Shown piece by piece: positions 17,014-17,880 of a stretch of DNA of 64,000 bases (positions within the stretch are counted from its first letter, which is position 1; every line of letters starts with the position of its first letter). The DNA lies in contig NIVC01003608.1 in assembly GCA_002269645.1 (NCBI GenBank), positions 1-64,000 of the forward strand, in the 5' to 3' direction. Made by a program: the position numbers and the translations under genes. This stretch comes from Macrostomum lignano. Taxonomy: Eukaryota. Under the pieces are notes generated by a model. It did not search any database and was not told where the DNA came from. It saw only the letters and a list, made by a program, of their open reading frames with translations.

Positions 17014-17880
17014 ATGCCGCTGCCGCAGAGCACTCCAGCTGTTTTCGCCGTCGCTCTTCTCGCCCTGACGCTCTTCGCCGCCAGCAACACGGCGGAGGCG
17101 GCCCCGCTGTCGCGTCTCAGCGAGTCGCAGCTGCTCGAAGCTGCAGAGCTCCTGGACGAGCTGGATCATGCGGGGTTGGAAGATTCCGTGAGGTATTGGC
17201 GAAATTCCGTCATGCTTTTGTTCAATCAGCAATGTTTTGCGCTATAAAGAGTTGCGCGCATCCAATTCTGCCAATTTTAGCGGTCGCATGCGGCTGGTCA
17301 GGCGGGCCGGAATGGCCAAGCGCGGCGGCTCCTTTGATGCAGCCAAAGTGTTGGCCAAGCTGGCAGAACTCAAGGCTAAGAACGACTTCCTCACCCAGCG
17401 CGTCCGGTGCGTCTGATAGACAGATAGATAGATAGATAGATAGATAGATAGATAGATAGATAGATAGATAGATAGATAGATAGATAGATAGATAGATAGA
17501 TAGATAGATAGATAGATAGATAGATAGATAGATAGATAGATAGATAGATAGATAGATAGATAGATAGATAGATAGATAGATAGATAGATAGATAGATAGA
17601 TAGATAGATAGATAGATAGATAGATAGATAGATAGATAGATAGATAGATAGATAGATAGATAGATAGATAGATAGATAGATAGATAGATAGATAGATAGA
17701 TAGATAGATAGATAGATAGATAGATAGATAGATAGATAGATAGATAGATAGATAGATAGATAGATAGATAGATAGATAGATAGATAGATAGATAGATAGA
17801 TAGATAGATAGATGATTCTGTACATACACTGTAATATCTGAGGAATCCACTGCAAATTTCGTCATTTCAGAATGGGCTGA
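17014..17880 (+). CDS. NPY/NPF-like neuropeptide precursor (104 aa, 3 exons); predicted mature GGSFDAAKVLAKLAELKAKNDFLTQRVRM-amide
   Basis: Exons 17014-17192 (AG|gtattg), 17281-17406 (ttttag|; CG|gtgcgt) and 17871-17880 (tttcag|A ATG GGC TGA) join in frame. Hydrophobic signal peptide MPLPQSTPAVFAVALLALTLFAASNTAEA, acidic propeptide, RR and KR dibasic sites, terminal Gly before the stop. Phase-2 intron inside the penultimate Arg codon, as in NPY/NPF genes. Confidence 0.75.
17415..17814. repeat. (GATA)n microsatellite filling intron 2 of the neuropeptide gene
   Basis: About 400 bp of near-pure GATA. Confidence 0.97.

Follow-up and report, generated by a model that had tools for sequence, protein, structure and literature searches.

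Across phyla, NPY/NPF genes carry an intron between nucleotides 2 and 3 of the Arg codon that precedes the last residue of the peptide, and this hallmark intron has been used to place the divergent C. elegans FLP-27 in the family. Ten planarian npy genes share it, among them Smed-npy-11 ("atypical neuropeptide Y," BK007021; Collins et al., 2010), whose Leu end (RPRL-amide) is the sole known non-aromatic precedent in NPY. Among the other planarian genes, Smed-npy-7 has a Gly-stop end, and N-terminal propeptides are found in npy-7 and npy-10. A second set of flatworm peptides, the RL/RM-amides (Smed mpl, npp-1, npp-22 and ppl-1; Sm-npp-14, GLRNMRM-NH2), shows an Arg-Met-amide end on 6-7-mers that are cut from multi-copy precursors.

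The Macrostomum lignano gene analyzed here resembles an NPF-type prohormone in its predicted working, with the architectural hallmark of that family. It lies on the forward strand of the window, that is, the whole 64,000-nucleotide stretch of DNA that was analyzed. The window and contig NIVC01003608.1 (assembly Mlig_3_7) are collinear, starting at position 1 of the contig. Exon assembly from the sequence read over 16500-18500 gives a three-exon CDS (17014-17192, 17281-17406 and 17871-17880, with 179, 126 and 10 coding nt), which starts at the ATG at 17014 and encodes a precursor of 104 aa. From its N-terminus, this precursor is made up of a signal peptide, a propeptide, the KR site and GGSFDAAKVLAKLAELKAKNDFLTQRVRM, with Gly and the stop at its end, and can be spelled out as MPLPQSTPAVFAVALLALTLFAASNTAEA-APLS...AGMA-KR-GGSFDAAKVLAKLAELKAKNDFLTQRVRM-G-stop. 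The gene model proposed in the initial annotation, with both junctions and the last coding exon of 10 nt, was matched exactly on reassembly. The features of the locus are as follows, a slash marking a splice or cleavage boundary here and below.

14215..14301, + strand: 5'UTR exon of the annotated transcript, with a GC donor at its end (AAG/GCAAGT)
14302..17004, + strand: 5'UTR intron, GC-AG, 2.7 kb, rich in tandem arrays
17005..17192, + strand: exon with the start codon, the signal peptide and the start of the acidic propeptide; 179 coding nt, phase-2 end
17014-17100, + strand: signal peptide MPLPQSTPAVFAVALLALTLFAASNTAEA, as read from the sequence
17193..17280, + strand: intron 1, 88 nt, GTATTG...TTTTAG, phase 2
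17281..17406, + strand: exon 2, with the remainder of the propeptide, KR and most of the mature peptide
17318-17323, + strand: KR cleavage site, predicted from the sequence
17324-17406, + strand: mature residues 1-27 and codon positions 1 and 2 of Arg28
17407..17870, + strand: intron 2, 464 nt, donor CG/GTGCGT, acceptor TCATTTCAG/A, phase 2
17415..17813, + strand: (GATA)n microsatellite of about 98-99.8 units inside intron 2, from a repeat scan
17871..17880, + strand: last coding segment AATGGGCTGA (A ATG GGC TGA), in which A completes the Arg codon as its third nt, followed by Met29, the Gly that donates the amide and the stop
17881..17971, + strand: start of the 3'UTR, read directly and conserved in the two other copies of the gene
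17966-17971, + strand: ATTAAA variant of the poly(A) signal, read directly

Both coding introns are in phase 2, and the second interrupts the penultimate Arg codon (CG/A), just ahead of the terminal Met. An alternative 5' splice site (GG/GTTGGA) may exist in the propeptide at about 17175, within 17170-17192, because two UniProt models are devoid of LEDSVS (DHAG/GRM), as would follow from use of this upstream donor.

This gene, which had been presented as hidden, is in fact already deposited in GenBank and UniProt, yet without functional annotation. The 104 aa match at 100% PAA50561.1 ("hypothetical protein BOX15_Mlig025860g3, partial"), which ends in ...QRVRMG and corresponds to the same spliced CDS, while related UniProt models are labeled "Secreted protein" or "Uncharacterized protein." The GenBank annotation of the assembly derives exclusively from transcript evidence, through a pipeline combining STAR/StringTie/TACO with a mapped de novo transcriptome, ORFs being called by TransDecoder (Wudarski et al., 2017). 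As the deposited model is purely transcript-derived and ends in QRVRMG, the 17406/17871 junction, on which the initial annotation had staked its proposal, is present in a transcript-derived model and has indirect RNA support. No description of the gene was found in the literature on RVRM-amide, on the locus tags or on M. lignano neuropeptides; it is new as a described entity, the precedent for a non-aromatic "atypical NPY" being Schmidtea npy-11.

The gene exists in three near-identical genomic copies, g1 on NIVC01001713.1, g2 on NIVC01002803.1 and g3 in this window, as expected from the redundancy already described for the DV1 line. Exon sizes (179/126/10) and the mature peptide are identical in the three copies. 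Likewise conserved are the 88-nt intron 1 and, in intron 2, the donor, the acceptor and the final 57 nt; this second intron measures 1626 nt in g1, 196 nt in g2 and 464 nt in g3. An old, diverged paralog, PAA94096.1 (Mlig030474g1), is 98 aa long and ends in KR-SGSNDFNAARLLAKLADFKAKNDFLTQRIRM-G-stop (KNDFLTQRIRM-G-stop). Its exons have 179, 108 and 10 nt, the first being exactly as long as in g3, and its phase-2 intron falls inside the Arg codon (CG/C), ahead of the last segment CATGGGCTGA; paralog and g3 share a CG/N Arg-codon intron followed by ATGGGCTGA. If intron 2 is retained, the paralog reads RIR-stop and g3 reads RVRCV-stop, without Gly, so that the two genes agree by their spliced ends alone. 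When 1.84 billion representative proteins were scanned exhaustively with HMMER, all relatives recovered came from M. lignano. HMMER and profile searches, which have little power for 30-residue peptides, detected no orthologue outside M. lignano; a word-indexed search with a 48-aa alignment gave no match but missed even the known copies and is uninformative.

An older UniProt model of the paralog, A0A1I8FAB3 (...RIR/SSMARSGHRF...), was rejected as a chimera with the next gene. The exon that it joins to the peptide gene belongs to another ORF, at 7366-7530 of the locus L002 and about 300 nt beyond the paralog stop, which opens with an ATG of its own and with what resembles a signal peptide (MARSGHRFNAALLPMRLLLWLLLLG / MARSGHRFNAALLPMRLLLWLLLLGQPAPQLA); this ORF may be a second gene for a small secreted protein.

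Codon comparison of the paralog with g3 gives, for KR, peptide and Gly together, 78% amino acid identity, with a dN of 0.14, a dS of about 0.95 and a dN/dS of 0.15; for the signal peptide and propeptide, identity is 30% and dN about 1.0. The strongest constraint bears on the C-terminal KNDFLTQR[VI]RM-Gly: the last 13 residues show a single Val/Ile difference between the paralogs despite several synonymous changes, KR and Gly are invariant across the compared loci, and the terminal Met is found in 4/4 loci. These values point to purifying selection on the mature peptide between the paralogs, and their pattern is the one classically seen in neuropeptide precursors that yield one bioactive peptide with an important C-terminus. 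A real, transcribed gene, beyond chance, is confirmed by the deposited transcript model, the extra copies, the architecture of the paralog and the dN/dS of 0.15.

The deposited transcript adds to the model of the initial annotation a 5'UTR exon (14215-14301). Its GC donor AAG/GCAAGT is kept in 3/3 near-identical copies, ahead of an intron of 2.7-3.0 kb (also L003 1979 and L004 5261), and the acceptor of this intron, CCAG/ACACAAGAAATG at 17004/17005, lies a few nt ahead of the start codon. In this copy the exon is in frame, with ATGs at 14212 and 14218. Both are created by a copy-specific insertion, ATGAATATGAAAACTAGA (14205-14225), where g1 and g2 read TGAA, and translation from them would place 31-33 more residues in front of the signal peptide. 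The upstream ATG at 14218 was rejected as the true start, since it comes from this insertion, is not conserved and the extension of g1 is frame-shifted. As the insertion ATGs are copy-specific and the g2 model, a complete CDS, starts at the ATG equivalent to 17014, 14215-14301 was treated as UTR and 17014 as the start. Because UniProt models begin at TQE, the acceptor CCAG/ACACAAGAAATG could also be a site for spliced-leader trans-splicing.

The precursor has the generic features of an amidated neuropeptide precursor, namely a signal peptide, a dibasic site, a C-terminal Gly and conservation centered on the peptide. The signal peptide was read directly from its hydrophobic core and its AEA/A and AQA/A sites. 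Signal peptide, KR and C-terminal Gly are all in place for the amidated 29-mer ending in RVRM that had been proposed, and the lack of a C-terminal flanking peptide was borne out by the Gly-stop end. Processing would start with removal of the signal peptide after AEA (residue 29), followed by a prohormone convertase cut after Lys73-Arg74. Peptidylglycine alpha-amidating monooxygenase would then act directly, as no C-terminal convertase/carboxypeptidase step would be needed on a precursor ending in Gly-stop. The predicted product is GGSFDAAKVLAKLAELKAKNDFLTQRVRM-NH2, of 29 aa and a monoisotopic mass of 3175.77 Da, and that of the paralog is SGSNDFNAARLLAKLADFKAKNDFLTQRIRM-NH2, of 31 aa and 3509.868 Da. 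The secreted R-[V/I]-R-M-NH2 peptide is very probably amidated and would most likely act as an intercellular signal via a GPCR. That the gene encodes a real precursor of an amidated, secreted signaling peptide is, in our judgment, highly likely.

The mature peptide is devoid of Tyr and Pro, is rich in Lys, Ala and Leu, and has a side-chain net charge of +3. AlphaFold2 (AF2), run on a three-sequence alignment, predicts a helix over residues 80-103 with low confidence (pLDDT 48). The helical hydrophobic moment is 0.31, not above that of shuffled sequences, whereas NPY, Smed NPY-8 and Moniezia NPF reach 0.53-0.69.

The attribution of the gene to NPY/NPF had been founded in part on the phase-2 intron in the Arg codon. 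This premise is confirmed by the literature, and the M. lignano intron is at that very position (CG/A at 17406/17871, the same in g1 and g2, and CG/C in the paralog). The R-x-R-[F/Y]-Gly end is found in part: the peptide has R-V-R and the amidation Gly, with Met in place of F/Y. This Met and the absence of the helix Tyr, both pointed out in the initial annotation, are confirmed in the peptide sequence, which shows no Tyr at -10/-17, the flatworm NPF positions. The length of 29 or 31 aa is within the range of about 28-40 of an NPY/NPF single peptide, and there are no N-terminal prolines. The layout of the precursor is not the canonical one, in which the peptide comes right behind the signal peptide and is followed by GKR and a C-flanking peptide; here a 44-aa propeptide and KR stand before the peptide and Gly-stop after it, a layout with partial precedents in Smed npy-7 and npy-10. 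The additional phase-2 intron in the propeptide counts against NPY/NPF.

Sequence comparisons gave no support to family membership. The precursor has no match to Pfam PF00159 (Hormone_3) at E<=10, a Pfam scan gave noise only, and hhalign produced no alignment of the peptide pair with a 16-member NPY/NPF alignment. The reference alignment included human NPY/PYY/PP, the Drosophila, Moniezia, Arthurdendyus, Aplysia and Schistosoma NPFs, and Schmidtea sequences. With an ungapped, C-terminus-anchored profile from which the RxRxG tail was excluded, the M. lignano peptides reach non-significant z values of 1.45 and 1.15 (p 0.08 and 0.13), vs. 3.8-7.4 for true NPY/NPF members in leave-one-out tests. 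The claim that the F...L...RxRx spacing matches that of NPFs thus finds no statistical support. Of the proposed NPY/NPF-like identity, what stands are its sole NPY/NPF marks, an intron at the hallmark position, an end in RxRx-Gly and a fitting length; what does not is anything that would come from Pfam, hhalign, the profile or a terminal aromatic residue. Membership by sequence is not demonstrated, and as neither the sequence nor the last residue agrees with the family, we do not file the gene as a demonstrated member.

Among the nearest described genes is Smed-npy-11. Like the M. lignano gene, it encodes a single long peptide, has its penultimate Arg codon split by the hallmark intron and ends in an amidated residue that is not aromatic (RPRL-NH2). 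Unlike the M. lignano peptide, which has none of these features and ends in Met, npy-11 keeps the NPF helix (DYLHHLNLYF), a Pro at -3, GKR with a C-flanking peptide and a match to PF00159. Smed-npy-7, with its ...RPRYG-stop, its N-terminal propeptide and no flanking peptide, is similar in layout, and npy-8A gives a 28-29-mer, of the same length, that starts with xMFDSA..., to be compared with GGSFDAA... in M. lignano. However, npy-7 and npy-8 have RPR[YF] ends and a Y/L/N helix pattern, and their similarity to the M. lignano peptide is not significant. Canonical NPY/NPF (vertebrate NPY/PYY/PP, Drosophila NPF and Moniezia NPF) also show the phase-2 split Arg codon, R-x-R-X-Gly and a comparable length of about 30-40 aa. 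The M. lignano peptide differs from them by its Met end, its lack of PP-fold prolines and of conserved tyrosines and its weak amphipathicity; there is no CPON, and the peptide does not come immediately after the signal peptide. The Val at -3 is the residue found in Drosophila NPF, which ends in ...RVRF-NH2.

The likeliest of the origins considered is that the gene is a much modified offshoot of the NPY/NPF superfamily, which is expanded in flatworms. In such a descent, the phase-2 intron and the R-x-R-X-amide end would have been kept, while an aromatic last residue and an amphipathic helix rich in Tyr would have disappeared. We regard descent as an NPY/NPF offshoot as an evenly balanced matter, and the whole explanation, a secreted amidated signaling peptide derived from NPY/NPF, as the best available at middling confidence. 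A more specific version is unlikely, in which these genes would be the Macrostomum NPF orthologues, possibly the only ones, still signaling via NPY/NPF-type receptors. A flatworm-NPF profile search, weak owing to the word index and the annotation of short ORFs, found no canonical RPRF-amide precursor among the deposited M. lignano proteins; the same search recovered Schmidtea npy-1 to npy-11 and mollusc and arthropod NPFs.

The main rival of an NPY/NPF offshoot is an orphan neuropeptide specific to the Macrostomum or macrostomorph lineage, in which the intron and the RxRx-amide end would be due to coincidence or convergence. In its favor, all sequence-based family tests failed, the relatives found by exhaustive HMMER scanning are confined to M. 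lignano, and the long N-terminal propeptide, the extra intron and the lack of CPON make a precursor unlike classic NPY genes. An orphan origin would nevertheless leave to chance an intron at the diagnostic bond and phase, for which we estimate a probability of about 0.6% (one of the two introns of a 315-nt CDS falling at that exact bond). It would also leave to chance that this intron occurs together with Arg at -4 and -2, with a Gly for amidation and with a peptide 29-31 aa long. The intron has been retained in the paralog at a dS of about 1, and expanded and atypical npy genes are known in flatworms. We consider an orphan peptide possible but doubtful, and the NPY/NPF offshoot is retained as our working explanation.

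Two other identities were weighed against the same data. The peptide could belong to another Arg-Met/Leu-amide family, be it NMU/pyrokinin/SCP, myomodulin-like RL/RMamide or a long helical amide of the CRH/ELH type, and Met-amide ends are indeed common in flatworms (ppl-1 YFSPRMamide, mpl/npp AVRLMRMamide, Sm-npp-14 GLRNMRM-NH2). Vertebrate NMU, which ends in FRPRN-NH2, also has an RxRX end, and precursors of the CRH type have one long amide, placed C-terminally; both points would favor this identity. The F-x-P-R-X-amide pattern of PRXamides is however absent, position -3 being Val/Ile instead of the defining Pro and position -5 being Gln. The Arg spacing is -4/-2, vs. -5/-2 in the xRxMRM peptides of myomodulin-like type, in place of whose multiple short x-R-x-M-R-[ML]-amides there is here a single 29-mer. 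More generally, the flatworm RL/RM-amides, which resemble the M. lignano peptide by their Arg-Met-amide end and come from the same phylum, have another Arg spacing or a Pro at -3, and are multi-copy 6-7-mers as opposed to one 29-31-mer. As the peptide also has no profile or PDB match to any peptide hormone, a PDB sequence search giving chance helical matches only, we hold membership in one of these families to be very improbable. A secreted peptide without a signaling role, such as a cationic antimicrobial or a gland secretion, would be in line with the net charge of +3, the Lys/Ala/Leu-rich composition and the predicted helix. Against it are the amphipathicity of this helix, which does not exceed that of shuffles (muH 0.31), and the location of the top constraint on KNDFLTQR[VI]RM-Gly, typical of a receptor-binding amidated end; it too is very improbable.

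The initial annotation had further suggested that splicing of intron 2 acts as an on/off switch. The RVRCV-stop end which it had deduced for a retained intron was reproduced in translation, and the lack of Gly would indeed prevent amidation. Yet any retained coding intron would likewise destroy the product, and retention in the paralog gives RIR-stop from an intron that contains an unrelated 23-bp minisatellite and no GATA. The number of GATA units is 31 in g2, about 98-99.8 in g3 and about 380 in g1, a twelve-fold range among otherwise identical copies, in a window of which 42% is tandem repeat; moreover, all deposited transcript-derived models are spliced. As its copy number varies widely and it is absent from the paralog, the GATA array looks like a neutral passenger, and regulated retention of the intron that bears it, as a switch for amidation, appears extremely improbable.

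The tandem repeats of the 64 kb form 44 merged arrays. Among them are a purine-rich minisatellite with 87 copies of a 26-bp unit at 11652-13952, a (CTGT)n array at 22374-23447 and another GATA array, (GATA)59, at 63762-63997. The 5'UTR intron contains (TGTC)93, from 14476 to 14847, as well as a minisatellite of 34-bp units (16381-16970) that ends 44 nt before the ATG. Directly downstream of the peptide gene is an annotated gene for 811 aa (19082-25962, + strand) without a Pfam domain; several of the tandem arrays overlap with it, and its synteny with the peptide gene holds in 3/3 copies (L001, L003 and L004). On the opposite strand, an uninterrupted 993-aa ORF (499-3480, - strand) in a block of 64% GC encodes acidic repeats of the SVEQSAE type, one motif resembling a C2H2 zinc finger (FMCKHCSKSYASKSSLRSHVKSIH) and long tracts of Q/H/A, with a weak match to DUF3540 as its only Pfam result. 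An ORF at 36634-37248 (- strand) matches hexapeptide-repeat, left-handed beta-helix models (Hexapep 1e-15, eIF2B-epsilon LbH 2e-14), and probably represents one exon of a gene similar to eIF2B-epsilon or GMPPB.

What the gene means for the family depends on its origin. If it is an orphan, it would be one more lineage-specific neuropeptide, useful for annotation and unsurprising; either way, its models are at present merely labeled "hypothetical protein" or "Secreted protein." If it is a true NPY/NPF derivative, the limits of the family would be stretched, the gene architecture having outlasted all recognizable residues but R-x-R, and it would offer a natural test of the co-evolution of NPY-type receptors with a non-aromatic C-terminus. 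Should the genes be NPF orthologues, an early-branching flatworm lineage would have swapped the aromatic-amide pharmacophore, supposedly essential, for a Met-amide end and replaced the Tyr-rich helix by a Lys/Ala-rich one. As NPY-8 controls germline maturation in planarians, an unusual NPF-like ligand in M. lignano, which is tractable and transgenic, would be useful for flatworm neuroendocrinology.
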